Assembly (NCBI GenBank): GCA_964036045.1
Contig: OZ038378.1
Span: forward strand, 172,794,001 to 172,858,000
DNA: 64,000 nt
Reading direction: 5' to 3'
DNA from: Eutreptiella sp. 'Long Island Sound 2002'
Taxonomy: Eukaryota > Protista > Euglenida
The notes under the pieces were generated by a model. It was not told the origin of the DNA and made no database searches. It worked only from the letters and a program-made list of their open reading frames with translations. Made by a program: the position numbers and the translations under genes. Shown piece after piece: positions 5,001-29,000 of the stretch (positions within the stretch are counted from its first letter, which is position 1; every line of letters begins with the position of its first letter).

Positions 5001-8000
5001 GCACAGCCGGGCCTCCGAGGACGCAGCCCATTGCGAGCCGAGGGGGGCCCTTGTGCATTTGGCCAGGGAAGGTGAACGTTGCCAGCAGCCGATGACCCCC
5101 AGTTACAGCCCCCAGTCATTAAGGCCCGAGCCCAGGGCTCCTTTTAACGACTCGGCACCACTGGTGTGCCCCCCCCCCCCCCCCCCGCCTTAAACGATTG
5201 GGCCAAATTTTTTTCCGGGCCTTTGGCCATCAAAAATTTTCTCTAGCAGCTTCGGCACCTCTAAAAACTCAGCACCACTGGGGGGGCTGGAACCCCCCCC
5301 CCCCCCAAAAGGAGCCCTGCGCAAGGGCAGGCAGGTCAACACGGCAGCCTGCCCTGCCACCGGGTTTCAGGCATAGTTTTTTCGGTATCCGGACCCACCC
5401 GTCTACCAGTTCCCATTGGTGCGACATCCTGGCCATTGCCTTTTGGTGGCAGCGCCTTTGGCGCATACACACAGACAGTCGCGCGCGCGCACGCACGCAC
5501 GCACTGCATTCCCTCCTGTTGTTGCAAGGTTCTCCCAAGGGAGGGTACCCCATTCAACTCCCAGGCTCCAGCATCGCCTCACCGTGAGACTGTCTTGCCC
5601 GGCCTCCCCGCTCCTCCCTTCATGACTGAGGGTCCGTTCTGCCCCAAGTGCTTGCGTCTCCCAAACGCCCGGTTCTGTTCCAAGCCGCTTAGTGGCCGCT
5701 TCTGCCGCCGCGCCTGTTCTCCCTCACCTTCGAGCACAGGCCCAGTCTGCCCCCCCTTCCGGACCCTCAACCGTTCCAGTCCTGTCAGGCTCTGAGATCC
5801 GAACCCCCCGTTGTCCTCTTCACCTTCGTCTGCCATGTTACCACCTGCCCTTCGTCCTTTCAGATCCGGACGGGGGTGGACGTGCAGGTGGGGTCGTCCA
5901 ACGTCGTGCCCGCACGGCAGATGGAGGTCGAGCCCGGGGCCCAGTGGCACCTCTGCGTCACAAAGAACAGCAAGATGTACTTCCAGATCCGCTGCCCCGA
6001 CCTCGACAGCCGCTGGTCGGCGTACTGCAACGTGGGGGAGATCAGCGAGACGGTGCTGAAGATCCAGTATCCCAAGCAGCAGGTCTCCAAGCACTGCAGC
6101 GCCGTGAGCCTGCGGGAACTCAAGCAACGGCTGATGGTGCTCGGTGTCGACTACAAAGACCGCATGTACACCCCGTCAGATCTTCTCGGTCTGTTTTGCG
6201 GCTCGGGTTCACGGGATAAGGGCATTGTTGCGGATTCGCATCCCCCCCCCCCCCTCTTCCCCCGTCCATCTGGTTGGTGCAGATGGGTGGGACCTGTCCG
6301 CACAAAAAAACAAAAAAGGGGGCGATGGAGAAGTGAATCTGACTGCCCTGACTGGGGGAGGGGAAGCAGGCCCAGAAACCGGGATTCACAGCCGGATGCC
6401 CGGGAAGTGACCCCACAAGTGGACATCCCACGGCCCAACAGCCTCGTTGGGGAGTCGTTGGGGAGGGCTGCCCCACCCCCGGCATTGGGTGTCCGTTTGG
6501 ACACACCTGGCCAATGCCGAGGGTCGTTGCCCCCCTGTGTGTGGACGCCAGGCGCCCGGGCAACGCCCAGGGAGTGAAAGGCAGTGAAACAGGGACAGTC
6601 CGAGGGCTCCGTTGGCACAACCTACCAAGGGAAGCAGGGAGGTGAGGATAGGCCAGACCAGGAGATCAAGGGCACTAGGCGGTGAGAGGCCAATGGGCAC
6701 CGCTTCCTGCGGAGGGAGAGGGTTCAAGGAAAGGATAAGGGTAAGTAGCGAGGGGCCAATAGGCGCCACCAGCTTCAGACAGCAATCCACCCCGGCGTCA
6801 TGGGCAAGAGCCCGTTTGCCCGACACTCCTCATGTCAACTGCGCCTGCATCAGTAGATCCGGGCCTCGTCTGCATCCCGTTGCTGTCACACACTGCACAA
6901 GCGAAACAACAAGCAGCCAAATGCCTGGCAATGCAGCGCACCCCTGATGGGTCACACTCGGTGATCCGGAACCCCCTGGCCCTGTGCCACACTTCCCACA
7001 TTGGTGGTGTTGAGTGTTGTCCTGTTTGCTTCCTCCCTTCCTCTGCCTTCAGACCCCTGGTCATCCCCCCCCTCCTGCAGGCACGTACCAGCAGCTACTG
7101 CGGAGTGCGGAGGAGGAGGCCCCAAAGCTCAGTAACTGGGCTCTGAAGCGGTGCCTGCAACGTGTGGGGGTGCCTCTGGATGGCACGGAGGACGCCGGCA
7201 TGCTGCAGGCCAAGTACTACGCCTTCATCCAAGAGTGGCAGGAGGTGCAGCTGTCAGAGTACATGGACTGGCTGACGCCTGTGGATTGCGACCTGTTGTG
7301 CGTACAGGTGCGTCGTCGGCCAATGAGGGAGGCTCGGTAGTGATGCGCGCGGCAAAGGGGCCCGTCCAATCCATAACCCACGGGGCCATCGCTCTGTCCG
7401 CGGGGGGCCCGTTCAAAGAAGCATACATATGCCAAAGGGCCGCGCGCTTCTGCCCCCCCCGCCCCCATTCCTCGAGAACAAAGGCCCTGTCGGTGCACCT
7501 GCTCCCCCGAGGATGTATTAGAACAACTGCAAACCACAGGAGGAGGGACCCCCTACTCCCCCTGGACCCCCTCCTGGACCAAGATTTTGCATCGGCAAAA
7601 AATGAACGGAACCATGAATTTGAGCAGTTTCAGATACACAAAAATTTTCGGTTCCGGACCCCCCCCCCCTTCGTTGCTTCTAATACATGCTTGCCTGGAT
7701 CTCTTTCGGTGCATGCTTCATCCCCTCTATCCCCCCCCCCCCCTTGTCTATACAATGTACCCCCCCCTCCCCCCACACATGGCCCGCACTCGTACACACG
7801 GTGCAACCCGTGTGCTAACATGTGGCGCTGACCTGCTCCGCCCCAGAATTGAGCTATGACCCCATGGGCCAGCATCGGTAGATCCGGTCCGCCCTTGACA
7901 GAGGTCACGAGGCTGTGGCCTCGTCTGCATTCCGTTGCTGTCACGAGTGAAACAAAAAACAGCCAAATGCCTGGAAATGCAGCCCACCACCGATGGGTTA

Positions 8001-11000
8001 CACTTGCTGATCCGGAACCCCCTGGCCCTGTGCCACACGTCCCACATCGGTGGTCGAGAGCACCCTCTAAAGTTTACGGTCACGGGAATGACTGCGTGTG
8101 GAGCATAGACGCCAAGGGACAGAAGCAGCCGTTGTGAGCAGAGGTACTTACAACTGTCCACTGTCACCGAATACACGTAGTTTCCCCCACTGGCTTGCAT
8201 CAATTTTCTTCTGAAATCTCAAACCAGTGCGCACACCCTCTGAGTGCCCACCGGCATACGTACTTAGCGTTTCTGGCAACACACCCGCAAATCCCCTAAT
8301 GACTTGCACCAAAACCAGTGCCACGGGATAGTGAGCGTTGGGCAACAGGAGATGGTTTGGGAAAGGAGGAACTGTCCCCTGTCTTGCTCTCACTCGAGCC
8401 CGTGCAAGAACACGAAAGCATGCACCTCGGCACGTTTCCGGAGTTGAACTGAGGGCAATGAAGGTTGTGGAGGGCAGGCGCAACACGTTGCTCTATACTG
8501 TTGCTCTATACTGTTGCTGTATACTGTTGCTGTATACTGTTGCTGTACACTGTTGCTCTATACTGTTGCTCTATACTGTTGCTGTATACTGTTGCTGTAT
8601 ACTGTTGCTCTATACTGTTGCTCTATACTGTTGCTGTATACTGTTGCTGTATACTGTTGCTCTATACTGTTGCTGTATACTGTTGCTCTATACTGTTGCT
8701 CTATACTGTTGCTGTATACTGTTGCTCTATACTGTTGCTCTATACTGTTGCTCTATACTGTTGCTGTATACTGTTGCTCTATACTGTTGCTCTATACTGT
8801 TGCTCTATACTGTTGCTCTATACTGTTGCTCTATACTGTTGCTGTATACTGTTGCTGTATACTGTTGCTCTATACTGTTGCTCTATACTGTTGCTGTATA
8901 CTGTTGCTCTATACTGTTGCTCTATACTGTTGCTGTATACTGTTGCTCTATACTGTTGCTCTATACTGTTGCTCTATACTGTTGCTCTATACTGTTGCTC
9001 TATACCGTTGCTCTATACTGTTGCTGTATACTGTTGCTCTATACTGTTGCTGTATACTATTGCTCTATACTGTTGCTCTATACTGTTGCTGTATACTGTT
9101 GCTCTATACTGTTGCTGTATACTGTTGCTCTATACTGTTGCTCTATACTGTTGCTCTATACTGTTGCTGTATACTGTTGCTGTATACTGTTGCTCTATAC
9201 TGTTGCTCTATACTGTTGCTCTATACTGTTGCTCTATACTGTTGCTCTATACTGTTGCTCTATACTGTTGCTGTATACTGTTGCTCTATACTGTTGCTCT
9301 ATACTGTTGCTGTATACTGTTGCTCTATACTGTTGCTCTATACTGTTGCTGTATACTGTTGCTCTATACTGTTGCTCTATACTGTTGCTCTATACTGTTG
9401 CTGTATACTGTTGCTGTATACTGTTGCTCTATACTGTTGCTCTATACTGTTGCTGTATACTGTTGCTCTATACTGTTGCTCTATACCGTTGCTGTATACT
9501 GTTGCTCTATACTGTTGCTCTATACTGTTGCTCTATACTGTTGCTCTATACTGTTGCTCTATACTGTTGCTCTATACCGTTGCTGTATACTGTTGCTCTA
9601 TACTGTTGCTCTATACTGTTGCTGTATACTGTTGCTCTATACTGTTGCTCTATACTGTTGCTCTATACTGTTGCTGTATACTGTTGCTCTATACTGTTGC
9701 TCTATACTGTTGCTCTATACCGTTGCTGTATACTGTTGCTCTATACTGTTGCTGTATACTGTTGCTGTATACTGTTGCTCTATACTGTTGCTCTATACTG
9801 TTGCTCTATACTGTTGCTCTATACCGTTGCTGTATACTGTTGCTCTATACTGTTGCTCTATACTGTTGCTGTATACTGTTGCTCTATACTGTTGCTCTAT
9901 ACTGTTGCTCTATACTGTTGCTCTATACTGTTGCTCTATACTGTTGCTGTATACTGTTGCTCTATAGTGTTGCTCTATACTGTTGCTCTATACTGTTGCT
10001 CTATACTGTTGCTCTATACTGTTGCTGTATAATGTTGCTCTATACTGTTGCTCTATACTGTTGCTCTATACTGTTGCTCTATACTGTTGCTCTATACCGT
10101 TGCTCTATACTGTTGCTGTATACTGTTGCTCTATACTGTTGCTGTATACTGTTGCTGTATACTGTTGCTCTATACTGTTGCTCTATACTGTTGCTCTATA
10201 CTGTTGCTGTATACTGTTGCTCTATACTGTTGCTCTATACTGTTGCTCTATACTGTTGCTGTATACTGTTGCTCTATACTGTTGCTGTATACTGTTGCTG
10301 TATACTGTTGCTGTATACTGTTGCTCTATACTGTTGCTCTATACTGTTGCTCTATACTGTTGCTCTATACTGTTGCTGTATACTGTTGCTGTATACTGTT
10401 GCTCTATACTGTTACTCTATACTGTTGCTCTATACTGTTGCTGTATACTGTTGCTCTATACTGTTGCTCTATACTGTTGCTCTATACTGTTGCTGTATAC
10501 TGTTGCTCTATACTGTTGCTGTATACTGTTGCTGTATACTGTTGCTGTATACTGTTGCTCTATACTGTTGCTCTATACTGTTGCTCTATACTGTTGCTCT
10601 ATACTGTTGCTCTATACTGTTGCTGTATACTGTTGCTCTATAATGTTGTATACTGTTGCTCTATACTGTTGCTCTATAGTGTTGCTCTATACTGTTGCTC
10701 TATACTGTTGCTCTATACTGTTGCTCTATACTGTTGCTCTATACTGTTGCTGTATACTGTTGCTCTATACTGTTGCCGTATACTGTTGCTCTATACTGTT
10801 GCTCTATACTGTTGCTCTATACTGTTGCTCTATACTGTTGCTCTATACTGTTGCTGTATACTGTTGCTCTATACTGTTGCTCTATACTGTTGCTCTATAC
10901 TGTTGCTCTATACTGTTGCTCTATACTGTTGCTCTATACTGTTGCTCTATACTGTTGCTGTATACTGTTGCTCTATACTGTTGCTCTATACTGTTGCTCT

Positions 11001-14000
11001 ATACTGTTGCTCTATACTGTTGCTCTATACTGTTGCTCTATACTGTTGCTCTATACTGTTGCTCTATACTGTTGCTGTATACTGTTGCTCTATACTGTTG
11101 CTCTATACTATTGCTCTATACTGTTGCTGTATACTGTTGCTCTATACTATTGCTCTATACTATTGCTCTATACTGTTGCTCTATACTGTTGCTGTATACT
11201 GTTGCTCTGTGCTGTTACTCTGTACCGTCATCGACACTGTTACTCTGTACTGTTGGTCTTTCATATCACTGACAGGCATCCCAAGCATGGTTTTTACTTC
11301 TCACCCCCCACAAAGCCTGCCACTCTTTTGCAAAGGTGGCTGTCGCGCAGCCCAAAGACATCAGATACGCGTCCATCAGCAGTCTGCCCGGGGACAGTCC
11401 CCCTTACCTGCTCGAGAACCGCACCATCTACCCCTTCCTCGTGAGCCAACGGCGCCTGAGCGAACAGTACCGCCTGCCCCCCCAGTCCACGCGAGGTTTC
11501 TGCTGGGAGAGCCCCACGGCAGAGTGGGTGTTGGTGCTCTTGGTGGACACCGCCTCGGATCAGCGGATGAAGGCTTTGAAGGGGATGTCGTACTACATCG
11601 ACCTAAAAGAGGTCGCCACGGGCAAACACTTGAGGTGCGTGTTGGCGACTTGAGCATGGAGCGGGGTGCGGGGGTGGCCTGGCCGGACCCGGTGGAATGC
11701 AACACCCAGGGCCGGTGGGTGGGTCCATGACCAGTAGCTTAAATCGCGCACCCTGCGCATCACCGCGACGTTCCAGATGCTGACGCTGGGGATTGTGGGG
11801 TTCCAGCCGCATGATGCGGGAGGGCGGGTCGGTAGCATAATGACGCCGTCAGCTGATGATGAACAAAATGCGCAAGCAGTAGTGACGTGTCACGCGAGTG
11901 GGAAAAAAAAGAAATATATTTATGTATTTGTTTCGAGTGTCACACGAGCGCTCCCATGATACTCAAAAAAAAAGAAAAAATAGAAATGCATTCTACATCC
12001 CTCTCCCCTACTCTCGATGGCTCCCCAGCATGGCTCTCGGGTAGATCACACGCCTACAATGCGGAAATGGTGCTGAAGGACGTTTGGAGGGCTAGGGCTT
12101 GGGTTCGACGAACCAAAATGGGCCTAAAAGGGCTGCGCATGGGCACAATTCACCTTTCTTCCTTTAGCGCTCGCGCTGGCTCGCACTGACGCCCTGCCCC
12201 CAAAAAAAGAAAGAAAAAAATAATTTTGTCCTAATTTTTTCCTGGGTGACATGCGAGTGCCCCAGGACACTTCTCAATGCTTCTGTGAAACTTACCCCCA
12301 CAAACACCGACAAAGCGCACATTCCACATTTTTTTGGCATTGCCCCCTTGCGAGATCATGCAGTGTTTTGTCCCTTTTGAAGAAAAATTTGGCCTCGCCT
12401 TCGACGCCCAAACTTGCTTCCCCCCGTTGATTCATCCCGTAGACTCAGCGAAAAAAAAAGCGGAAAAATGCGGACCACAACGAAGGTCATCACAAGGCCC
12501 TGACTAGCTGCCCATTCCTGTCAAGATGCCTTGCCGTTGGTGCCCACGCCGGTGCCCGGCTCCGGGCCGGTCCCCAGCGCTGTGGGCAGCACATACCCCT
12601 TTGCTTGGCCATGGCACGCGGGCCCTCACACGCCACGTGGTTCATGGTCCCGGAGGAGGTCTGCACCCTTGCCCGCCCCCCCCCCCCACGATAGTGTCGG
12701 GTGTCGGTGTCAACCAGAGCCGACCATCGTAGTGTCAAGAATCGTCCACAAGTGACGGCCCACCGTTTGCAGACCGCTTCCTTGTTTGGGGCGGGAGGTG
12801 CACAAGCGCGCAGGAGCCGTCCATCGAAGGAGGTGGGGCTGCTGCATTTGACAGTGGGGCTTCAATCTTTGGAGCCCCTGAGGCACTAGAGAATCGCACC
12901 GCTGTACCGTTGCTCTCGGAGTGTTTTTTTTTTTTGTGGTTTCCATGGCCCATTGACAACGCCCTGCCGTGCACCTGCGACCATCGGCTTGAGCCCCACG
13001 GCTGCCTCACTGCCCGTGGGCCCTGAGACCAGGACGGCGTGCCCACGATGGAGCCGACCGCCAGAGACGTCGAGTACCTCGTGACGGAAAAGCCCCCGGA
13101 GCTGCTGGACTTCGTCGAGGGGTGTGAGATCCCCGGCATCCGCTTCAGCCTGCATCCCCCCAACATCTACTGCTGGATCAAGGCGCAGTACCGCTGCGAC
13201 CGCAACGCTTACCGCCTGACGTCGATGCACTTCGACCCGACCATCATCCGCAGCCTGCTCATGGCCGGCAGCCACGTGCCGATCGGGTTCGATGCCAGCG
13301 GCAACGCGATGCTGTTGGTCATCGACCCCCCGTGCCCCTCCAACAAAGTGACGTGGCATTACGTCAGTTGTGATCTTGAGACTGGGACGAGGGTGTGTCT
13401 CAGCCAACCCCTGGGGGAGTGCTTGTGCCGCGGTGTGCGGGCTATCCAGGGAATGGCTGGATCCTTTCCCGCGATGCTCTTTCCACTGTTGCCGCATGGC
13501 CTCTCGTTGCGCTGATAGTTCCGCCGCGCATGCCGCATCATCCCTATGCTACCCCTTGATTCGCTCCCCCGCACTTGTGCATTCGAGGGGCCTCGGTTTT
13601 GCTGGTGTACTTGCCCCCAAGCCCTATCCTCAGCCCCAACCGCACCCCCACTTCCGAGGAAGCATCTGTGTAAGTGGCTGCATCAATGACCTTCCCGCCC
13701 AGACCTCAGCACACTGGGGCATGACGAACACAATATCCGGTCCCGGTTCCAAACGCAATTGCATTGTTGTGTATGCAGACGAGGAGAACGTCCGGGGGGG
13801 GATGGCGTACAGGGGCTGGTCAGGAGGAGAGCCCAAAGGGCGCACAACGTCTGACCCTCTCTGGTCCTGCGCACGATCTTCCACATCAGATGCGGTGCAG
13901 AGCACCCGCCATTTCACGGTCTGGGGATGACTGAATCTGAAGCCTGTCTGGCAGGGGGAGCAGAGGCCACGGGACCCACCTGTCCTCATTGCCCCACACG

Positions 14001-17000
14001 CGTGCTCCCCCACAACTGACCTCCATCAACAAGCTCCATGCACAAGATGCGTCATGCAGTGCGCCTGATCTCGTGCCCCGCCGCGTTGTACTGTCCGCCA
14101 ACCCAATGGCGTTCTGCCCCGCGGGTGCACCTCCCATTTTCAAGCCAACGCAAGTGCTTCAGCATTGCGACCGTTTCACCAAAACGAGCCTCCCCCCCCC
14201 TCCCCCACACCAACAAATACACTGTGGATTTGCATGGAGCACTTAGACGAGCGAGTTTTGTGTATTCCCGTGTATTGGGGCTTGTGGTCGCTGGGGATTC
14301 AGTGACTTACTGTTCAAGAATTTTCCATTGAAAAGAATTCAGTTAAAGGATGGGGACGCACTTTAGGGGCAGAACACCGTTGTGGCCGTGGATACTGTTG
14401 TGCGACCCCCGGTCTTCCCCGTTGTTCGTTGCCCCGTTGGCCTCTCAGGACTTGTCGCAATGGCTCGATGAGGTCGGGCCACTGCCGCTGGGGATCCGCG
14501 GGATTGTGGACTACGAGACGCTGCACATGTGGGTCCCCGTGCCCGTGGAGCCGCTGCAGCGCCGCAACACGTACTGCGTGAAGCAGTTCAAGTGCGACGG
14601 CCCGCAGTCGGCCCTGAGCCAAGTCGCACAGGCGGCGGCGGACGGGAACGTGTTCCTGGACTTCGGCGAGGACCTCGTGGCCACGTACATCGAGATCACG
14701 CCGGTGGAGGATGCGGCGGAGACCGTCCCCGACACGGCGGACACCCTGGCCTCGCCGGAGCATGCGCTATGGACGCAGGTCCGGGACGCGCCGTCGGTGG
14801 GGGTTGGGTGACCCGGAGGCTGGGGCATGCAGGACCCGCCCGGGGGGTCCAAAAGGGACATATTGCAGCCTTTGTTGGGGGTGTTCAAACCCCACACTAG
14901 CCCCGCCTGCAGAGATGGACCTAATTTTCGCGCCACTCGGGGGGTGGGGGAGGGGCGGGGGGTAGTGAATCGTGACACGTCACGAGATAGAGAAAGTGCC
15001 ATAGTGGGAAACCGTTGGTTCCGAAAATATTGTGACGTCCAAAGGGCTTCGCGGTACTTTTTTGGGACGGATATCGTGACGCTCTGTCACAATATGTGGG
15101 GGGGTGGGGAGGGGGAAGGGGGACCCACACACCCCAGTTATATCCATTCCTGCCCCGCATTCTTTTCTTTCTGGGGAGCGGCACCCAATTTGGCGGGAGG
15201 GTGTTGAGTGTTGAGTTTCCAGACTTCCCATCAGCGTCCGGCAAGACAACCGGGTTTCGCTGGGATTCAGCCCCCCCCCCCCCCCAAGGAGCCCCCTTGA
15301 GACAGGATCTCCCTCCTCAAGGGGAAGGAGGGGGCAGGGAGAGACGAACCCACTCCCACTCCCCGTCCCCCGCCCCCTCCTCTACCCCCTCCCTACAGCA
15401 ACACGCACCCCCGCCACCCAATGCCCCCCGAGGGCAGAAAGAATGGAGAGGGCGGGGAAGAAACAGGGCAGGGGGAAAGGGACGAACCAAGGAGGGTAAC
15501 AGGACAGGGCAGACCGCGCTCGCCGAAAACGGTGCAGAGCGCAGAAGGAGAACAAGGAAAGGAAAAACGGGAAAGAATCATTGTGGTTGTTAGAAGCCCC
15601 TGTCAGGAAAATTATCCTGCAGATGCACACCCCAGCGCGCTCAAGTCAGTGCTGGAGTCGGCAAACCCCGCATGGACTTGGAGTGTGCATCTGGATGCAC
15701 CTGGTCAACGGCACGGGCAACAGCCCGTCTCCGGGACAGCCAACCCTGCAGTAGTCAAACAGGACAAGTCATCCAGGGGCTCCGTTGACACAACCAAAAC
15801 ACGTTCGGGCCCACAGAGGGTCAGAATGAGCAGTGGCGAGAGGCCAATAGGCGCCGCCAAAGGCAAACAATCAGATACCGAGGCCTTGTGCCAACCCCCC
15901 CCCCCCCCCCACGCACACATGCCACTCGCAATACCAGCCCCTGTCACATTCAGAACTGAGTCGGAACCTGCTGCATCCGATGCACGGCTCAGCACGGCAC
16001 AGTCGTGCCGACCCCCGTCCGGTGTGGCGGACGGTATGTCTCGTTTCCACACGACTGCGCACCAAAACGGTTGGCCCAACCCCCAAAACGCCCTCAGCAA
16101 TACGCAGATCGGTGTCTGCAAAGCACGTTCCCGCCGCCGCCGCCGAGGCCTTCGCTTGCTGCCTGCCGCCCTGCTCCCTTGCCCGCAGGTCGCCGACGCG
16201 ATAAGCCCCGCTGCAGAGGCGCAGCCCCCCCCCGCCGGCCCATCGGCCCCCGCATCGGGTGCGGCACTCGACGCGGTGGAGGCCGAGCTGTGGACGAGGA
16301 TGGCAGCCACGCAGGATCTGCCCCCTGCGCCGCCGCCGCAGCCGGAGGGCGCCGCCCAAGTGCCCGCCGGGAATGTGGCGCCGACGCCGCCTGAGCGGAG
16401 GAGCCCTCCTCGAGTACCGAAATGGAGCAACGGCACCGTCCTCCAAGACAACGAGGATCACTTTCTGGAGGAGGCCCCCGCTGCCCCGAAGGCGGCCCAC
16501 GAGGTGGCGGCGGCCGTGACGGCTCCTGCTGCTGTTGCTGCCCCCGAGGGGGCCTCAGAGGCTGCGGCCGCGGGTTCTGAGCGGAAAACGGAGGTGGCGG
16601 CTCCAGAGGAGGTCGCGGAGGCTGTGGTTGCTCCTGAGGCTCAGCATCAGGTGCCCCAAGAGCTGCTGCTTCTCAGACAGCTGCTGCAGGAGCAGCCTCC
16701 TGTTGCTGCTGCTCCTGCTGCGCCTGAGGCAGCCCCCCAGGCTGAGGCCGCTGCTGAGAAGGCGATGCAGGCGCCTGTTCCCCCTCCCAAGGCAGCCGCC
16801 CCCGTTGCTGCCGCCGAGGCCGCCGCCCGCCGCAGCAGCCCCAGAGCGGCGCACCTCATGTCGGGCTTAACCTCCGCATTCTCCGACGGGCTGTACGTGC
16901 CCCCGGGCTCGCCCGAGTGGGACATCGACGGCGCGGCGGAGCACCGGATGAAGGTCGCGGGCGGACCGTTGATCCGCAACGCGGGCGCCGGGCGGGACGG

Positions 17001-18757
17001 TGGCCGCGACGCCAAGGTCCCGATGCGCCCCGAGCCTCTGAAGGCCGCGGACGTGCAGCCGCAGGGGTTCTCGCCCTCGGTGGCGCACTCCATATCACAC
17101 TCGTCGCCCAGCATGGACGGCTTCGAGGACCAACTGTTTGCGGAGGTGCGTCTGGCAGGCCCCCTCAACCCTCTGCAAACCCCCTAACAGCTCCACCCCC
17201 ACCACCAAATCCAACTCCACCAAATCTTCCACAAATCTCAGCACCCCCGCCACGTGTGCCTGGCCCAACGGGGACTGTGGCCCCCCCAAAGCGCACGCGA
17301 CACGAGGCGGCTGCTGGGCCGGTGGTGTGCATTGCAGAAGGAATGGTGGCATGAGACCGGGGTTGGCACCCGACCCCCGGAGGATTGAAACAAACCCCCC
17401 GAACGACGGAAAGCAAGGCTGTCGCGCGAATTTTGCTGCCAACCCCGCACGCCAACTGTGGGGTAGTATGAAGGGTCGTGTGGGCCTCAGCCACCGGGCT
17501 CCTTTTAACAACTCGGCACCACTTGGGGGGGGCACCCCCTTCAAAAGATTGGGCCAAGTTTTCTTCCGTACCTTTTGGTCAATCAAAAAATTTCTCTGGG
17601 GCCTTCGGTGCCAATTAGTTTAGACCAAAAAATTTCTTTCGCGCCTTCGGTGCCTCTACAAACTCAGCACCGCTGGTGGTGGTGGTTTTGGGGGGGGGGG
17701 GGGTGCTGAACACCCCCCCCCTCCCCTAAAAGGAGCCCTGCTCAGCAACCATGTGCTACCCTCCAGGACCCTCAAGACCATCCTTTCGCAGAATTCTTGA
17801 CTCAGATTAGTGTGATCAATGTTCAACAATGTTCACAGGCTTCTTCTTCTCCGCAGCCATGACCCTGACCCTGTCCAACAATGCCATGCATCAGTGGTCC
17901 ACAATCATTTCCAACCCTGGAGATCTCTCCCCGCACCGTCTGCCCAGATGCTTCTCGGATAGACCGGGCCTGGGGGCGACTGTATTGACACCCGACGCTG
18001 TAGACCGGAACGCGTTGTAGATGTCATATGCCGCGTTGCGCATGCGGGTGAGATTGTCAAATACCGTGGCTGTTCAGGCCTCAACGCACTCGCCCGTTGA
18101 ATCGCGCACGCGTCCCTGGCTCCTTGCGCCCTCTAAAGGGGGCGGGTAAATGTGTCAGTCGGTTTGCAGGGCAGTGCTGGCAGAGCAACCAGTTGTTCAA
18201 GGGAACAGTGGCAATTTACAAAGGGTACAAAACCTCCAAACTCCGACACAGACTCCCAACCCTCTAGAACCTTCTGTAACCCTGGCACAATCGCACGTAA
18301 ATTCTGCAACCGTCTTCATCCGGCCACACCCCAATGCCACAACCCATGCTAATCCTCCCTAGCCCAACAAGACCCGCCATGTAATCTTTGTACAAGGTCA
18401 TGGGTGAGTTCGAGAAGTACCGATTGGCGCCCGCTGCGCGACAAGAGTCCACATTCCGCCGCCAGAAGGCGTTGCCCAAGCAGACCGGCCCCACCGCAGT
18501 GGCGGTGGGTAACTCAACCCCCGACACCGGCCCGAAGACCAAGAATTATTTCAAGGCCATGGCCGCGATCAAGATCCCCAAATCGGATATGCACGCATTG
18601 CATAAGATGGATATCGAGCTGCAGGATGCTGCAGGCATCCCAGGCGGAGGCGTGGCCCAGCAGGTGCTCCTGCACTTGTCTTCTGCGCACTCCTATGCCT
18701 CTGCAATGCCTGTGCTCGTGCCTGTGTCTGTGCCTGCATGCGCCTGTGCATATGCCC

Positions 18758-18796
<39 letters not shown>

Positions 18797-21700
18797 GCCG
18801 GCCTCCGTGATTGCTGCTCGCTGCCTTGACTGCTGCCCGTTTGTTACGTATATCGTGTGTGTGTGTGTGTGTGTGTTTGTGTGTGTCTTTATATCTCCGG
18901 TGACTGGACATTTTGCATACCCTTTCAACTCCTTGACAGAACGAAAGACGTCTAGGGCTGCTCTGCAGCTCCTGGGGATTTCTCTCCGACCTGTTTCCTT
19001 GTGCTTTTGTTTGTTCGTTTGTCATTGCGGTTACCAATGTGCGCGCATGTGTGCCGGATTTGTGTTGCTGGATTTGCTCGACGGTGGTGCATGCCACATC
19101 TATGCGTACACCTAATTTGATGGATGTGCTTGTGCCTGTGCCCCTGCCTGCGCCTTTGCCTGTGCCCGTGCCTCTGTTGGTGCTTGTGCTTGTGCTTGTG
19201 CAGTGGATGCAGCAATGGTCAGCGAAAGGCAAGCCCAACGGAGACGGAAAGCTGCACACCGCCATCGCGGCGCACGCGGAGATCTGGGGCCGGGCCAAGC
19301 TTCCCACATTTGATGGGGAGGCGGCGCTGGACCGGGACCAGTTCGGCGCAATGTACGAGCGGCTGTACGGCCGTGCGCTGACGGAGCAGCAGCTGGAGGC
19401 CACGTTTCGGTTGGCAGAGGCCGAGGGGCAGGGCCCGCGCGCTTTCATGGACCTGCTGAAGTATTTGGAGAAGGTGACGGCGCAGCGCAAGGGCGACCTG
19501 GCCCATTTCTAAGTGGAGAGACGAGCGGCGGGGCAAGTCGGCCATGCAATTGCGGGGAGGGGGGGGCGGGCAGGGGGGGCCATTCGAGCCATAGGCCTTG
19601 CCCCGAGGGTTGAAAGGGTAGAGGGCCACTTACCGCTGCTGCCGTTGTGAAGACCGCAGTGGGCGGTGCACCAGCGGCGATTGATGCTGAATCGACGGAT
19701 GATGGTCCACCAGCGGCACTTGGCAGTCGACAGAATGGGTTTTCTTGAGGCTCTGATAATGGAGCACAGCGTTTGCTTTTTGCGAGATCATCTACCACTT
19801 TTATGTGTGGGGGTGTTTTGACCTCATATTTGCCTCAGGGAACGGGCTTTCTGGCATCAGTGGGTGGGGCTCCGTCTTACTGAGTCACACCTCTTGTGTT
19901 GGCTGGGCTCGAGCTGGGGGCTGTCGAGTGGTGGCTGCCCTGTCGTGTCGCAGTTTGCGAGATGCGCACGGGATTTGTTTAGTGTTACACGTTCTTCTTC
20001 GCTTCGCAGGGTTGGGGGCGTTGGGGTTGGGGCAAGGTCGAAAGAGACCAGCAGTGCTTTTCTGTTTGTGCTCCAAGGGCAGTTGTGCATGTAGGAGATG
20101 TGTACTGCCGTGGAGTGGCATTGGAATCCAATTTCCTCTTCTTTTCTTTAACGCGGCCAGCATCCCGGTCATGATTCACGGCCAAACGGACACCAGCACC
20201 CAAACGTCCGCGGGGTCGCCCCCTCTATTCATCTCCGCTTCTTGTTGAAGCGTAGGTGCCTATGCCTTCCATTTTGGTGCCTGACATGGAAAAATGGGGG
20301 TCTTCTAACGTCTTTGTATTGGCAGAGCAGCCTCCTTAGCATGATTGCCGTTGGCTGGGGGTCAACCGCCGGCAGTCGCCGTGCCACATGTCATGGGACA
20401 AAGCGATGTCTCTGTGCTTGTAATTCGTGACGCCCACTTGTACCACAGGCAGCTGGACAACCGAGGGCCATCCCGTTGCTAGTCCGTGCGGGGTAAAGTG
20501 GCGCAGGTTGTCCACCCCTCGCAAGGCAGTCTCTGGTTGACATATGCGCCTCATTGCATGTAGGTAGCCCTGCGACGCACAGACACTGGGTGCCTTTGCC
20601 TGCCCACTCACCGTATGGACAGCACAAGCGGAAACTTGTGGTGAGTTTGATGCGCAGCGCAACAATGTCGACAAACACTAACAAGTGCACCCGAACACTG
20701 CCATTCTCTGGTAGCCTCAAAGCAATGACGCGATTTGGCCTCCCCACCCCCTCTTCTTGTGCTCGTGGGTGGATCAGGCCGTTTGGCTACTGTAACTCCC
20801 CTCGCGTTCCCCTAGTGCCATCATCAGCCGCAAGACAATGATAACATAGTGTCTTGTCAGAAGTCCCCGCACTCTCCTCGGCAGGTTTTTTTTTTTTGTC
20901 TCTTGTCATACCCGTCCACCCATTCCTCAGTCAGTAATGCCGTAGGTGCGCTTGAGCCCAGACCCAAGTAACGCAGGAGCCTCTTCCCTCCAGGGAGCTT
21001 GTCCCTGTCGAGACAATCCTCCAGTGCTAGCACCAGTGTTGAGATTTTTTGTTGAGTACAGTTTGGGGCAGAGAGGACCCTCGGCTGCGGGAGCACCAGG
21101 CCCAATAGGGAGCCACAGGGCAGTGGGTGCACTGTGACAGTACCCGAGTTGCATGCCACAGCCATGGAGCCTCTTGTTCTGTCGGCGTCGAAGGCACCCT
21201 GCCACGTGACCCTCAGGGAAGCAGCGGTGGGACTAAGTGCCCTTCAAGCCCAAGGGCTTTGCTCCTAAATATGCACTCTCTCTCATGCCACAGCCATGAA
21301 ACGAACGCCCCTCTCCACTTGCACAAATACGGCTCTGTCCAAACAGTAGGTGCTGTCTTCGCAGCTTTTCGTGCTTTTCCCCGTTGTTTGCGCAAGGGTG
21401 GCGTTCATTTTGCATGCAAACAATTGTCCCATTGCCATGTCTTGCACCAGTCTTCGCAGCCTTGCCCCATTTCTCTGTGCATCAATGGGCAACTGTGGTG
21501 CAGTGGGGGCGTCAAGCCCGACTTGCTTCAAGTCTTGTAGCCACATCATACAACAGCGTATTTCCTGTCTCAAGGTTGATGCTGGATGCGGCATGTATTT
21601 ACTTAATGTGCGCTCATCATAGCCATGCGACTCCCTCGGCTCCCTTCCCCCTGCTTTCCTGCCTCTCCACCTCCACATCCACGTACACCTCACAGTACTC

Positions 21701-22980
21701 CTCCACAGAGCATTCCATTCTTCACGGTACTCCCTTCCCTTGCACCACGGCTGCAGTGCAGGCCTTGTTTCTGTGTTACCTAAAAGTGGGGAAGGCGCAG
21801 GGCGATCTTCGGGGATGGATGTCCTTTTCCCATTTCTTTTTCTTTTTTTAAATTTTTGAATTTGCATTTTGATAAACGAAGCCTGGTCAGTGCAGACAAC
21901 ACAGCACATGCATTCTCCAGTTGAGACAGACAAAGCAGTGGCACGCCTCACGAAAGGCTGCTGTGTCCACCAAAGGCACAATCATGCAGGCACACTGATG
22001 TGGATGCACGCTTAGTACTTTTGGTATGCAAGGCACTATTTCAGTGAATATCGCTTTGGTTGTCTGTGCCGCTTCTTCTTCGCCGACGCAAGGGCAACTG
22101 CTTTTCCCTGAAAAGGCACAGAGCGTCCCCGCAGAAGCCGTCTCCGACGGTGCGGCACACTGAAGTCGCATGCAGCTGAGCTCCAACCACCTGATGATAT
22201 CCCCTTGGGACTCATGGGGAGGGTCAAGTACCCTGGAACCTAACAAGCCACACTCCCTTCGATCGGCAGAAAAGTCGATTTCCGCATTTGCTGCTTTGTT
22301 GGGGGGTAGAGAGTGGAGGGAGCTTTGCATCACAATGCAGCATCACGAGAGCGTCGTAGCTTTCAGAGAACGCCAGTGAACACGTCTTTTTTTTTCTGAT
22401 GGTAGGGGACTCTGCATCATTTTTTGAACTGAATGCCGTTTCAGATGGGTGCCGTGTGCCCACCGTTTCCATTTTCGCTGTCATTAGCACCTATCCACAT
22501 GCTTCAAACCACGCTGACAGAACACACCTGCAAGGGCAGCCACAGGCACATGCAAGAAAACGCCGACTGTCCTGCCTACTGCCCACTGACCTACTAACTT
22601 CTGATGTCCCTCCATAACATGGTGTGGCACGCCCTGCACATGCATATGCACACTCACATGCACGATAGGTACAGATCCCCCATCATTGTCCCAAGCCAAC
22701 AAATGTACATAGCAACAGAGCAAACTACTTTTTGCATCCTGCTCATTTCATGTATGGATATGGAGATGATTTCATGGCAACACAGTATCCGTTTGTGTGC
22801 CACCGTGTGCGTCGCTGTATGTGCATTATTATATTGGAGGCCCGAAGAATCATTTCTGTCCACCATTGCTGTGTGTGCCATTTATTGTGTGGCTATACCA
22901 TTGCCATGTGTGCACCCACTGTATTTGCCCTCGCTGTTTGTGCCATTGCTGTGTACATTTTTGCTAATATGATTGCCATA

Positions 22981-23019
<39 letters not shown>

Positions 23020-26000
23020 CGAGTCCCCTGGAATCCAAGCTGTACTATTTGCATCAACCTTTTGTGTCTACAACCTCAAGCAAATTGTGATATCATTGGA
23101 TGGTGAAGCAAGACCATGGTCATCTATCTTGGGAGTGCTGTGGGAACATGATTTGGAAATGAGAAGTATTTCAAATTCGTACAGAGAAACAGGGGAACAT
23201 CAAGGATGAATGGCCAACCAACTCATTTTCACCAAGATTCAGAGTACCGGGGGGGGGGGGGGAATTAGGGAGTGATAAAATTGATTTGGACAAAATTCGA
23301 AGCCCTCCCCGTACCAAATTTTTCCTTCAATTTTAAGGATTCTCTGTGCCATGCTGTGTACATCAAACACGGGCTGCAGGGAGGGTTTCCTGTGTGCTGC
23401 ATGCAGTGTGAATGCCTAACATAGAGATGAGACACAGGGAATCGAATGGGAATGGAAATCGAAAAATGGAAATCCAGGAAATAACAGTAACCATCCAGAG
23501 CCCACCCGGAATCCACAATGAACATCCACTAGCAAGCAGCAACAATGGGCCTCGGACCAAATTTTTCCTTCATTTCTTGGAGCAATACCAATTTTTTACC
23601 CCCTTAATTTTGGTCATCCCAAAAAAAACCCTCTTAAAATCCCCCCCCCCCCCCGGTAGGGGGGAGTTGTAAACTGGAAGGGTAGGTTGTGAGGGTGACA
23701 TGGGCGTGGTGCGGCGCGCCCTAACCTAGAGGGTTGTGGGCAAAACGGATGATGTGCATGTGTGTATGGGTGACATGCTTGAAGTCCAGCTTTAGAGGCA
23801 ACCCATGTGTGCACCCAATTGTTGTGGTTCTTGTCCATCTGCTGCTCTAATACCCACATTGCATCCCAATATCCATGGCTTGTGCTGCAACGTGACATGA
23901 AAGGAATTTCCCGTGAAGATTCTTCAGCCCACTAGATAAACATCTTCAAAGACACCTTCCATGATGAAGTGGGGAAAAACTGTGAGAAATGGGGAACATG
24001 AGGCCGGGGAAGTACGCAGGAATGTGGGAGAGTTACATACTAGCTTTTGCAAAGCACGCATTGCGCGGGAAGCGTGCCCCATCAGAGGATAGCTATAATG
24101 AATTAATTTGCATGCATTTGGCGACAGTGGAATGGGCAAAGCGACCACCCTACATATTCTTTATTACCATTACAAAGTACTAGAGCTAATTTGGGTTCCA
24201 ACCTGAATCTTTGCAGTAGCAACTTGTTGGCTAATCACCATAGACAGTTCACTGAAGTGTTCCTTTGTGGTGCCTTGCAGATAAAAGAAGGTGCTGCCTA
24301 GTTGTGAGAATTCGTTGGCATGGTAACCGTAGAGGTAACACATTGCCATAATGACCTTTGGTCCATATGCATGCGTTAGAATATGCCCACCTGCCCTCAA
24401 GGGGTTCTTCATGCTTGTACCTTGGGTTTGGGAACTGCTGGGACGCTTGGGCTTAGTGTTGTAACTGTTGTTGCTGCAACATGGGCTTCTTTGGGAGCTA
24501 TTTTTGTGTGCATCTGGAGGGGGGGGAGGGGAGAGGCTTCTTTGGCAAATTGTGTTCCAAAAGTAGCGTGCAGTGCAGGGACCCCCCTCAAATCTGTCAG
24601 CAAGACTGGATGCCATATTGATGTTGTGCAAGGGTGGGTATGGGTACCCAGCACACTTACGAATATCATCCTAATGGCGGTTGCGGTGTTTAGCACAAAT
24701 TTTTTTTCCAGAAAATTTGCATTGCTGTTGTCATGGGACCTTTGTCATAAGGGCAAAAGGGGGCGTACCGTGCGCTGTGCGCGCGCTGTGCGAAAAGTTG
24801 GCTGTTCTCCACCACCGGGAGTTCGGTAAGTTCAGAAGATTGAAAGGACGTCATTGAATGGCTGCTGCAGTAGACGGGGCTATAGGGGGCAAAATGTGGG
24901 TCCCTGGGACCCATGGCAAGCATTAGATGTTTGAATTTTTGGGTTTTGAATTGATTGTGCATGAATCCGCAGGTGGGTGATTTTCAGGGTTGTTACCTGG
25001 ATAATCACCGTAATAATTGGCGCTGTGCCCGCGCTGTGCGAAAACGCCCCCAAAGCATGGTATTGCACCTCCCCCCCCCCCCCCCCCCGACCCGCCTTTG
25101 CTGTCTGAGAAACTGAGAAAGTCTGGCATGAGGTCAGGGTCATGCTGGTTGCTTCAAAACCTGACAGGAAGCCGGTGATTTCAGCGCGTGCTGGTAGCAG
25201 GTCTCAAACAAACCACATACCAGTGGAGGTTCTCACCAACTTGAGGGGCCAGGTCCAGGGACATGGGCCTTTTGAAGGCCTTGGCCGCCAGACTCAGCAT
25301 GGTCTGTGCTTCTGCGCGCGAGCTGACCCGCTAATCCATGCTGGTGTCCCTCCGTAATTTGGTTCTTCCCGCTGCAAACATACCCCCCCCCCCCCCCCGC
25401 CCCCTGCCACACACGCACAGCCTTGCCCAAGCACGACGTTGTCCAAGCACGGCGACCTTGTCTGACCATTGTGTTTCTGGTGGCAGAGTTTGTGGTCAAG
25501 AATGCACGATGATGGTGTGTGTTTGGGTGACGGCTGATGCCCACCCCTCTCCCTTGAAGAACCAATTGTTTTGCGTTGACGTGGCGTTGTCTAAGCATGG
25601 AATCTTCGTCTAAAAGTCGTTTTTGCTGATTTCGCGCGTTCTTCCACAGCGGGGCAGGGTATACCAGTCCGCAGCTGAAATGGTCCCTCAAAATGGACCT
25701 TTCTACATGCACTCAACATTGCATTGGGCCCTCTGGCGTCATGTTATTTTGCCGCATTTTGTGTTTTGTGTTTTGTGTTTTGTGCCCACCCTTTGACCCC
25801 AACCTTCCCCAACCCAACCAGAATCCTGTTCAAGAGACTCTATGCATTCCCGCCATTTCACAGCCTCAAGCCCCTGTCCGCCAGCCTCCCGGGCCAAGGC
25901 CGCCACCCTGAAATCTACTGCAAGATGCGGCATGGCAGAGGCGGCTCCATTGCCATATCCCTCTACGAGCGCCACTCCGAGGTCACAGTTGTCAGCCGAA

Positions 26001-29000
26001 GCCCCATCAATGGCCCCGTCTTCGAGTCTGTCATCCACGTCGAGCGCCTAGCAGTGTCCCTGATCCAGACCAGCCCGAAGCTGCGGGAGCTTGCGTACCT
26101 GTCCTGTAACACCATCCAGCTCATGCTCAAGATGACTCCTGTGGGGCTCAGGTATGTGTAATCGCAGCTTCGGTGATTGTGGGTAAACTGCAACCTCCCA
26201 AACAGGGGACAATTTCCTCGATGGACTTCGGTTTGCGCTTTCCCAAGATTTTTCGGACCCAGTCAAAAATGCAGTGTTTATAGTGTTGTTGGTGTTGTGC
26301 TTTCTGTACAACTTGTTGTGCATTTTGCACGACACCATCCTGAATTTTCAACTTGTGCACTATTCTGTCCAGTGTGTATACATTACACTCACGCACATAT
26401 TGTGGAATGTTAGGGATGGGACTCCCTGGCAGACCTCTTCTGAAATGACCCAGAGAAGGCCTCCGGTTGGTTGCCCTGGTTTGGGAGCATAAAAAACAAG
26501 AGACGAAGTACATGTGTGCCTGCCCACGGTTGCCCTAGGCGGTGTCCAGCACGTGCTCGCTTTTGTTGTGTTGTTTGCTTTCATTTTCCTTCCTTTCCAT
26601 TTTGACCATATGATGCCACATGGGTGGATTTTGTAGAAACTATGTCCCGTATGTACTGTCGAACATGGCAGTGGGTCGGGCTGGTGGGAGCCACCACCAG
26701 CCCGCATCCCCTGAGCAATCTAAACTAGCCCCCCTGGGTATCCTATTCCACCAGGAACCTGTGTTGCCAGTCAGCCGCGTGTGCTAGAGCATGAAGCGCT
26801 GGGCATTCAGTCTGACCAGCCTCAACCCCGCTCTGCGTCTTTGTTGAGGGGAAATACTCTGGCTGTTCGCGGGACAATCGCCGCAAAAGGTGTGTGCGGC
26901 ACAGGTACTCCCCAGCCATCGCACAACCAGCTAGTGAATGGTCGTGGCTTGCAAACAATCGTCATTGTAGCCTCGAACCAGAAAATGGGAGCAATTCTCC
27001 TTTTGCCTTTGTGGACCCGCACCCCCAAACTTGTGAGCAGAGGGAGAACTGTCCCCTCTCACCGACCAAAACACGTTTGCCCAGCGTCTCAGGACAATCA
27101 AGTGGACAGTTTCCTCCCCAAAACTCGACCAAGTGCGCATATTCCGAACTGGCACACTTTCTCAGCCTTCATGGCAACCTCACCCCCCACCCAGCTCCTC
27201 CTCCTGCCACCACCGCCGCAGCAGCCAAGGTGACAGCACCAGTTTGATCATGAACTTACTCCCGGCCAGTAGAAGTGGGCCAGCAGACGCAAGTGGCCAA
27301 ATCCCCATCACCTACGACAACACCAATCGCCACCCATCGCCCCGGGTGGCACATGTGCTGCACGATGGGATGGACAGACAGTACGTACACCATGGAGATA
27401 GGGGGTTGGGGTAAGGGGTGGGGTGCGGCATGATGTGCTCCCCACATGGACGTCCAAGCGTGGGAAAGGGCTGGTCTAAGGCTGTTGTGTGCCTCTGTAT
27501 GGAAGGTAAGAAGGTAAGAAGGTAAGGTATGGAAGGTAGGGGGAGTAACACGGTGCGCGCGCGGTGCACACGCGGTGCGTATACCGGGGGGTGTTGTGTG
27601 GACCGTTTCAGCTACTTTAGAGGCGACGTGCTGTTGGAGCCTATGCTTTTGCCCAGAACTGTACCTGACACTGCAGCAGGGCAGTGTTGCCACATGCGAA
27701 ATAGGGATTGGTGTGCAATAGTCTGTCATCTTTCAGCCTGTTGCTGCACTGGTTGCTTGTGAACTCGCCCAAGGGGGCCCTCACACCCGTCATAGCTCTT
27801 CCCCCAGCAACTTCCACGAAGGGACAGTATTTACAAGGGCTTCAAAGGTAGACCATTTCCTGGAGAAGCTGTTCAACGACCTGACGCAGTGCGCGCGCAG
27901 TGCATGCTTGACGTGTGAACTCCCTCGTAAGAAGGTAACGCAAGTGGACATCCTAGGGCCCAACAGCTGCTCTTGGAGAGGGTTCCTAGACCGCTGGTAC
28001 GGGTGTGTCTGCCTGGATTCACCTGGCCAATGCTGAGGGCCAGGGAAAGTCTGGGGGCCCCGGTGGCACATCCTACTGAGGGAAAGGAAGGGAGTGCAGG
28101 GAGGTGAGGATAGGCAAGACCGGTCGATCAACGGCACTAGGTGATGAGAGGCCAATGGATACCGCCGCCCATCGGGGGAAAGGGCTCAGGGAAAGGACAA
28201 GGGTCAGTAGCGAGAGGCCAATAAGCGCCGCCAGCTTCAGAGAGCAATCCACTGAGGCGTCATGCCATACGCCCCCCCCGCTCCTGTACACGGCAATGGA
28301 AAATCCCTTCACGCCTTTCTATCTCTGCCTCTACCTACAGTGCGCAGTTTTGGATGCAGTCAGTGCAGCTGGACGACCAAAGCGACCTAACACCCCACTT
28401 CCAAGTCGTCTTCACCAATGACCCCGAAAGCCCCGAGGGCTTCCAGGTGCACGTGAATCTGGAGCGCGGCGGTTACGGGGGGTTGATCCTACTGAAGTCC
28501 CTGACACTGAAATGTCCACCCCTGAACGTACAGCTGCACGAGGACTTCGTGGAGAAGCTTGTGCAGTGGTATGTGTCCCTCGAGGGCGCGCTGCAATGGT
28601 TCGTGCCTCTTGGGGACCTTGCACGGATGGTGCCCCTTGGGCATCTGGCGAACACGCTGAAGAGTTCGTCCGCTCTGGGGGATTCGCGGGTGCACAACCC
28701 GGACTTGGCGGTGCCGGAGGTGCACATCGATCTGACGCTCATCCGTGCGGCGCAGCGGGGTCAGGTATGTGCCGATGTGTGCTTCGGTTAGAATGCAATG
28801 GCGTGGCGCCCTTGTTCCCATTGGTATTTTGTGCCAGTCTACGAAAAAATGCGTTTTCTGCAACCATCTATCACCTCCTTCCTTGAACGCCTTCAGTATT
28901 CCTCTTCTTAGCTGCTCCCTCACCTCTGCAACCTTTACCCACATCCCTCAACTTGGCCACAGCTCCCGTCCGGGTAGATTTTGCCAACCTGCAGTACAAG

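Follow-up and report, generated by a model that had tools for sequence, protein, structure and literature searches.

A 64,000-nucleotide stretch of the genome of Eutreptiella sp. 'Long Island Sound 2002' (GenBank assembly GCA_964036045.1, contig OZ038378.1), which we refer to as the window, probably contains a VPS13-like gene on the plus strand that carries a second, complete and selectively maintained gene of five exons inside one of its introns. Both genes have the same orientation, and we infer that the locus gives rise to two separate mRNAs. The window corresponds to positions 172,794,001-172,858,000 of this contig (C1) in the 2.28-Gb assembly, has a GC content of ~55% and contains 0 N. 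Homology and Pfam searches were run exon by exon, and candidate splice junctions were compared by the number of codons to the next stop.

An earlier reading of the window made from its letters (the sequence-only reading) had paired a donor at 11634 with an acceptor at 25864 as phase-compatible borders of a host intron. We found both sites in the sequence. With splice borders marked by a slash, exon 6 ends in ...CACTTGAG/gtgcgt at 11634/11635, and exon 7 opens at 25863/25864 (tttcacag/CCTCAAG). The phases match, as the AG at the end of exon 6 and the C at the start of exon 7 form a Ser codon. The intron between them, which begins with GT and ends with AG, is much longer than the neighbouring host introns. 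Its designation as intron 6 holds as a count within the window, but not as a number for the whole gene, which starts at least 35 kb further upstream. The same reading had placed five phase-0 exons, rich in G and C at third codon positions (GC3), inside this intron, with their own ATG at 13048, an upstream TGA at 13024 and a TAA at 19510; all are present. These exons, A to E (13048-19512), lie wholly between the consecutive host exons bounded by 11634 and 25864. When both strands of the 14.2-kb interval were scored, coding-like composition was found only at 13.0-19.5 kb, and an Rfam scan of 11.0-26.5 kb gave no match. The features are listed here, with identities to a second copy of the inner gene (the paralog) and to a host ortholog (P0003), both described below.

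11336-11634, plus strand: host exon (exon 6), the end of a VPS13 VAB-like domain; phase-2 end at TTGAG/gtgcgt
11635-25863, plus strand: host intron of 14,229 bases that encloses the entire inner gene
13027-13047, plus strand: possible 5' untranslated region of the inner gene, after the in-frame TGA at 13024-13026
13048-13392, plus strand: exon A, 115 residues; ATG at 13048, donor AGG/gtgtgt; 60% identical to paralog residues 5-115
14449-14778, plus strand: exon B, 110 residues; borders ctctcag/ and CAG/gtccgg; 60% identical to paralog residues 116-220
16189-17145, plus strand: exon C, 319 residues; borders cccgcag/ and GAG/gtgcgt; Ala/Pro-rich, poorly conserved middle
18397-18663, plus strand: exon D, 89 residues; 53% identical to paralog residues 415-507
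19204-19512, plus strand: exon E, 102 residues (19204-19509) and the TAA; 51% identical to paralog residues 511-640
25864-26152, plus strand: host exon (exon 7), from acceptor tttcacag/ to donor CTCAG/gtatgt; 57% identical to P0003 residues 228-304

The inner gene, its paralog and its family

The inner gene consists of five stop-free exons, all bordered by GT and AG and all in phase 0, and the model encodes 735 residues. GC3 in the exons is 0.76-0.92, compared with a total GC of 0.52-0.61 in the surrounding intron. The TGA upstream of the ATG is in frame, and the TAA occupies 19510-19512. Donors at the locus are of the GTG type, tracts are C-rich and acceptors are CAG, as described for the conventional introns of euglenids (PMC11170887).

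A search of the organism's own genome revealed a second copy on contig C15, where exons A and B match at 58-62% identity within one 647-codon open frame. This paralog (L025:5062-7002, equivalent to C15:44493061-44495001, minus strand) is an intronless open reading frame (ORF) of 646 residues that is collinear with exons A-E from the Met through the stop. The A/B, C/D and D/E junctions abut exactly on the paralog, confirming three of the four inner junctions to the residue. At D/E, the gap on the paralog (507 to 511) is filled exactly by three unaligned residues that end exon D, and the C/D join (..LFAE/VMGEFEKYRL) parallels ..LFGKVSEEFEKYRL in the paralog. The B/C junction lies in unconserved sequence, and homology gives no support to its exact position. 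Matches of exon C to the paralog are patchy and comprise a WSNGT motif, an SGL..AF motif and the acidic ..LF end. A different donor for exon A, TAC/gtcagt at 13362, was rejected; homology fixes the donor at 13392/13393, where the end of exon A adjoins the start of exon B exactly on both the paralog and a protein from Eutreptiella gymnastica. GC3 of the paralog is 0.59 versus 0.76-0.92 for the nested copy, and the several kb around the paralog contain no further coding-like segment.

The E. gymnastica protein, an 'EF-hand domain-containing protein' of 614 residues (P0008; UniRef A0A6U7XH9...), has the same architecture and is collinear with the inner gene. In the nested copy, the paralog and P0008, the stop falls 10-13 residues past a shared LEK/LDK/LEQ motif. 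Over exons A and B, the nested copy shares 62-65% identity with P0008 and 59-67% with the paralog. Between the nested copy and the paralog, 65 of 111 columns in exon A and 57 of 85 in exon B are identical; the corresponding counts are 69 of 111 and 55 of 85 for the nested copy and E. gymnastica, and 77 of 111 and 59 of 85 for the paralog and E. gymnastica. The three sequences are roughly equidistant in the N-terminal domain, and the duplication is therefore old. Nonsynonymous divergence (dN) between the nested copy and the paralog is 0.30-0.38 in the conserved exons; synonymous divergence (dS) is saturated, so that dN/dS is not computable. The nested copy has no stop and no frameshift, and its canonical splice sites have been kept. 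We read this intactness after an old duplication, together with the low dN, as long-term purifying selection on the nested copy. The paralog may have arisen long ago by retroposition from an ancestor with introns, in which case the nested copy would be the parental type.

The inner gene belongs to a small family of euglenid proteins, whose members have a conserved N-terminal domain of ~220 residues, a disordered Pro/Ala-rich middle and a C-terminal pair of EF-hands. Compared with P0008 and with P0007, a Joint Genome Institute (JGI) protein identical to that of the paralog, the nested copy has the same domain order but is longer in the middle and lacks ~34 residues that include the first EF-hand. 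These residues are missing from exon E, which encodes the C-terminal part that corresponds by homology to the EF-hand pair. In Pfam, P0007 has an EF-hand match of 30.7 bits (cut-off 25.4), and the two EF-hand matches of P0008 are sub-threshold (26.8 versus 30 and 24.8 versus 25.4). Pfam scans of the individual inner exons identified no family, and a search of the ESM Atlas with the N-terminal domain of the paralog gave no match. AlphaFold2, run on a four-row alignment of the N-terminal domain of the family, returned a predicted local distance difference test score (pLDDT) of 46, too low for use. Judging from these comparisons, the nested product appears to be a homolog of EF-hand proteins that itself lacks a recognizable EF-hand calcium-binding loop. 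With its own start and stop, the inner gene is autonomous and not host coding sequence.

Euglenid mRNAs mature by spliced-leader trans-splicing. P0007 is encoded on a 2,997-nucleotide contig (L028). Apart from TTTC, the opening four bases, this contig agrees with the genome at 99.97% identity. In the genome, a pyrimidine-rich tract and an acceptor (...ttgaAG/) occupy the place of this TTTC; together with the next G, TTTC forms TTTCG, which we take to be the 3' end of the Euglena spliced leader. Thus, the paralog appears to be expressed as its own trans-spliced mRNA, represented by L028. We also searched the genome with a 23-nucleotide pattern (leader followed by GT, with up to three mismatches) that serves as a lead, not as a reference. 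There were 7,703 matches, compared with 8 for the reversed control, and all were exact among the matches listed. Therefore, the genome is that of a euglenid with Euglena-type spliced-leader RNA genes. A human or other animal origin of the window was rejected. The matches point to a very large, partly arrayed family of these genes in a Euglena-like organism. Leader-pattern matches (such as L035-L037; C2:22678-1731220) are often regularly spaced on contig C2.

Searches for further homologs and transcripts returned little. Word-index protein searches recovered only ORFs of the window itself (among candidates of 345-1099 residues for exon C and 89-283 residues for exon A). An exact 30-mer from exon 6 had no match in JGI metagenome contigs, which is uninformative, as the collection may lack the sample. 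A profile of exon A and the paralog had no match in these contigs and also missed the known transcript L028; because of this miss, the metagenome blanks are uninformative on expression.

The host gene and its long intron

When exon 6 alone was searched with HMMER against 1.84 billion representative proteins, there was one informative relative, P0003, a protein of 355 residues with 59% identity. P0003 is encoded on two 1.3-kb contigs, L026 (1-1323) and L027 (European Nucleotide Archive ERZ28668933 and ERZ28668937), from another organism. Its single frame matches the window at 5996-6148, 7086-7310, 11330-11626 and 25907-26137, segments that are in differing frames in the window. Exon 6 is 56% identical to P0003 residues 109-209; its start at 11336 is preceded by caaAG/ and, when placed on P0003, abuts the preceding exon. 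The linker between the last two matching blocks is 18 residues in P0003 and 17 residues in the product of the 11634/25864 join, so no insert and no extra host exon is needed in the intron. An LKP tripeptide, encoded in the window directly after the acceptor at 25863, has the same offset in P0003 and in the join. The continuous VPS13-like frame that the sequence-only reading had proposed for this join is thus borne out, as the ortholog passes the junction without an insert.

The ends of the contig that encodes P0003 look intron-like, with a pyrimidine tract and TAG/ at the 5' end and a loss of GC3 after position 1035. We infer that the P0003 contig is genomic DNA of a relative in which the four window exons form a single exon of ~1 kb and the 14.2-kb intron is absent. 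This suggests that the three introns that split the ortholog's single exon were either gained in the lineage of the window or lost in the relative. Given a related contig that lacks the intron, there is a hint that the 14.2-kb intron or its cargo is lineage-specific.

Three weak, independent matches to VPS13 stand in N-to-C order on the plus strand. The first, 35 kb upstream (L031:4122-5000, plus strand), is to positions 642-730 of VPS13_N (PF12624; E=4e-4, 18.7 bits, cut-off 80); no segment for the extreme N-terminus was located. The second is exon 6, which matches positions 509-569 of the 570 in VPS13_VAB (PF25036; E=0.033, 13.1 bits, cut-off 22.6); a Pfam scan of the exons upstream of exon 6 gave no VAB match. 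The third, at 37088-37594, has as its only PDB matches human VPS13C (residues 3531-3585) and VPS13A, both weak (E=0.012 and 0.02). Near the 3' end of the host, 38533-39123 contains a Pex24p/DysF-like match that is above the Pfam cut-off (E=2.7e-7) and that also matches a VPS13 segment of contig C390. BLAST of all window ORFs against the intronless VPS13 of C390 gave mostly noise, along with two weak collinear matches at the C-terminus. Most host exons match no Pfam family.

The host gene extends over more than 75 kb of the plus strand. Like VPS13 and other bridge-like lipid transfer proteins, it is very long, and its weak matches to VPS13_N, the final part of the VAB domain and the C-terminal region of human VPS13C and VPS13A occur in collinear order. 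It differs from them in that these matches fall below curated cut-offs and in the DysF/Pex24p-like segment near the C-terminus. On the order and collinearity of these segments, the host is very probably VPS13-like.

Clear Pfam matches to VPS13_N or VAB were found elsewhere in the assembly, on the small contigs C390, C1264, C1548 and C1903, which carry intronless VPS13 frames of 1,620-3,531 codons, in contrast to the divergent window copy with its many introns. These contigs may represent paralogs with few introns, or else DNA from a second organism that is present in the assembly.

Alternative readings and the proposed separation of the two mRNAs

Four observations weigh against the reading of a maintained gene inside a VPS13-like host. 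First, in the N-terminal domain the nested copy has 29 unique substitutions versus 17 in the paralog (~1.7-fold), an excess that could reflect relaxed constraint. Second, the nested copy has degenerate EF-hand loops, and Pfam returns no match for exon E at E<=1. Third, no same-species transcript of the inner gene or across 11634-25864 turned up in the searches that we ran. Fourth, the VPS13 identity of the host is built on matches under Pfam cut-offs.

One explanation would make the nested copy a relic, a duplicate that is silent or in decay and yields no functional mRNA. This would fit the larger number of lineage-specific changes (29 versus 17), an EF-hand region that is short by ~34 residues and goes unrecognized by Pfam, and our failure to find a transcript-derived protein in searches of narrow length ranges. 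We consider decay unlikely, since all five exons are open, the eight internal splice sites are canonical and GC3 remains at 0.76-0.92. Moreover, dN is well under the saturated dS. The duplication dates to about the same time as the split from the E. gymnastica homolog, and after so long a relic should have picked up stops or frameshifts.

In an organism that trans-splices, the acceptor at 25863 could receive a leader instead of being joined to the donor at 11634, and read-through from exon 6 reaches a TGA after 5 codons. The host would then be two transcription units, an N-terminal VPS13-like one that ends after exon 6 and a C-terminal one leader-spliced at 25863, and A-E would be an ordinary intergenic gene. 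We regard this arrangement as quite improbable. The ortholog has both sides in one frame on one contig, and the phase match of donor and acceptor recreates its linker length and LKP motif. In addition, there is no ATG at the start of exon 7, and the VAB-like and C-terminal VPS13-like segments flank the intron in the same order as in VPS13 proteins.

The sequence-only reading had itself outlined a scenario in which exons A-E are cassette exons that add ~720 residues to VPS13, through joins of 11611 to 13033 and 19473 to 25871, or else form an alternative 3' end of VPS13. The named sites exist, and the 11611-to-13033 join is in frame. However, this scenario is contradicted by the ortholog, which lacks the insert, and by the start and stop that the family has conserved. 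Both the paralog and P0008 begin at the same Met and end at a stop 10-13 residues beyond the point at which the insert would be spliced out. From the strong donor at 11634, every nested acceptor leads to a frameshift and an early stop. A truncated VPS13 isoform ending in A-E, which had also been suggested, does not hold up either, as A-E are out of frame from 11634 and a stop follows after 5-144 codons; such a chimeric isoform would be a truncated VPS13 with a junk tail. Overall, we give a role of A-E as VPS13 exons very little chance.

An assembly artefact, in which the 13-19.5 kb block was mis-joined into the VPS13 intron, might be suspected in a repeat-rich genome of 2.28 Gb with dispersed repeats in the intron and a 2.8-kb satellite array just upstream, but is highly improbable: the window has no N or gaps, the block would have had to land exactly in an intron, on the same strand and with the exons untouched, and the second copy is only ~60% identical, so the window copy is not a collapsed duplicate.

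For a maintained gene nested in a VPS13-like host, the likeliest route by which the two mRNAs are separated is trans-splicing and polyadenylation. Two candidate spliced-leader acceptors, ctgAG/ACC at 13027/13028 and accAG/GAC at 13032/13033, lie 15-20 nucleotides before the ATG at 13048, with pyrimidine-rich sequence upstream and no upstream ATG; we propose that one of them is used. In this model, the 5' end of the inner mRNA would be formed by spliced-leader trans-splicing at the AG at 13027 or 13032, and its 3' end by polyadenylation downstream of 19512. The VPS13 mRNA would be formed by cis-splicing between the 11634 donor and the 25863 acceptor, with the inner gene removed in its entirety. 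Transcription of the inner gene could start at its own promoter within the intron, or the inner mRNA could be processed out of the host pre-mRNA. If it is processed from the host precursor, maturation of the inner mRNA would compete with removal of the intron.

Spliced leaders are known to resolve same-strand transcription units in the polycistrons of kinetoplastids and the operons of nematodes. The locus resembles these systems in its setting, with thousands of leader-pattern matches in the genome, a leader tail on the mRNA of the paralog and candidate AGs near the inner ATG. Unlike in polycistrons and operons, the downstream unit would lie inside an intron of the upstream unit and not past its 3' end, which predicts competition of cis-splicing with trans-splicing and polyadenylation on one and the same precursor. 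A more speculative possibility, to which we give perhaps one chance in a few, is that the inner gene has no promoter and that its mRNA is cut from the VPS13 pre-mRNA by trans-splicing at ~13030 and polyadenylation after 19512, as an 'operon inside an intron'. If so, each primary transcript would become either a VPS13 mRNA or an inner mRNA, and the outputs of the two genes would be coupled.

The intron also contains two dispersed repeats downstream of the inner gene.

23240-23660, strand unassigned: dispersed repeat of ~415 bp, at least 10 copies with 89-95% identity on other chromosomes
24755-25055, strand unassigned: dispersed repeat of ~300 bp, at least 29 scored copies with 93-97% identity on many chromosomes

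The copies of the 300-bp element suggest a recently active family resembling short interspersed elements (SINEs) or miniature inverted-repeat transposable elements (MITEs). An older repeat family at 11881-12153 and 12320-12510 has copies with 69-88% identity in both orientations, sometimes adjacent and inverted, and looks MITE-like. One 190-bp segment here shares 97% identity with just one other site, C1:144321574-144321766. Other introns of the VPS13-like gene contain long, highly regular tandem arrays at 8487-11259 (13-bp unit, 214 copies, 94% match) and 34148-35986 (8-bp unit, 230 copies, 89% match); both are low in GC and strongly skewed toward T over A.

Same-strand nesting in a euglenid

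The sequence-only reading had started from the premise that nested genes are usually antisense to their hosts. This premise is overstated, as the same strand holds ~37% and the opposite strand ~63% of nested genes in human (PMC3192792), and mouse and human are 'broadly similar' in orientation (PMC11694760). Catalogues of parallel nested intronic genes exist for human, mouse, Drosophila and the ctenophore Hormiphora (PMC11694760, PMC3192792, PMC8527503). Another example is the H13/Mcts2 locus (PMC13309782). Hormiphora has many parallel nested genes and also uses trans-spliced leaders (PMC8527503). In a survey of 1058 genomes, the share of nested genes in protists was reportedly negligible (PMC8527503), and we saw no reference to nested genes in two papers on the genome and the introns of Euglena gracilis (PMC6366073, PMC11170887). 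For trans-splicing in Euglena, the former paper cites Tessier et al. 1991 (as cited in PMC6366073).

The present locus shares with the parallel nested genes of animals a complete coding gene, one long host intron, a common orientation and flanking transposon-like repeats. It differs in that the host is a euglenid gene and that spliced-leader trans-splicing is on hand to form the inner 5' end. Compared to the common case in which a retrogene lies in an intron, the situation is reversed: the nested copy is multi-exonic and the free-standing paralog is intronless. Animals provide well-known cases of same-strand nesting, which is reported to be rare in protists; judged by homology on both the host and the inner side, the locus appears to be a validated case in a euglenid.

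For genome annotation, the arrangement means that an ab initio predictor could fuse exons A-E into VPS13 or split VPS13 in two. For the biology of such loci, same-strand nested genes require that the RNA machinery of the host pass over a complete series of splice signals and 3'-end signals. The VPS13-like locus offers a test of whether trans-splicing resolves nested transcription units and whether expression of the host and nested genes competes.

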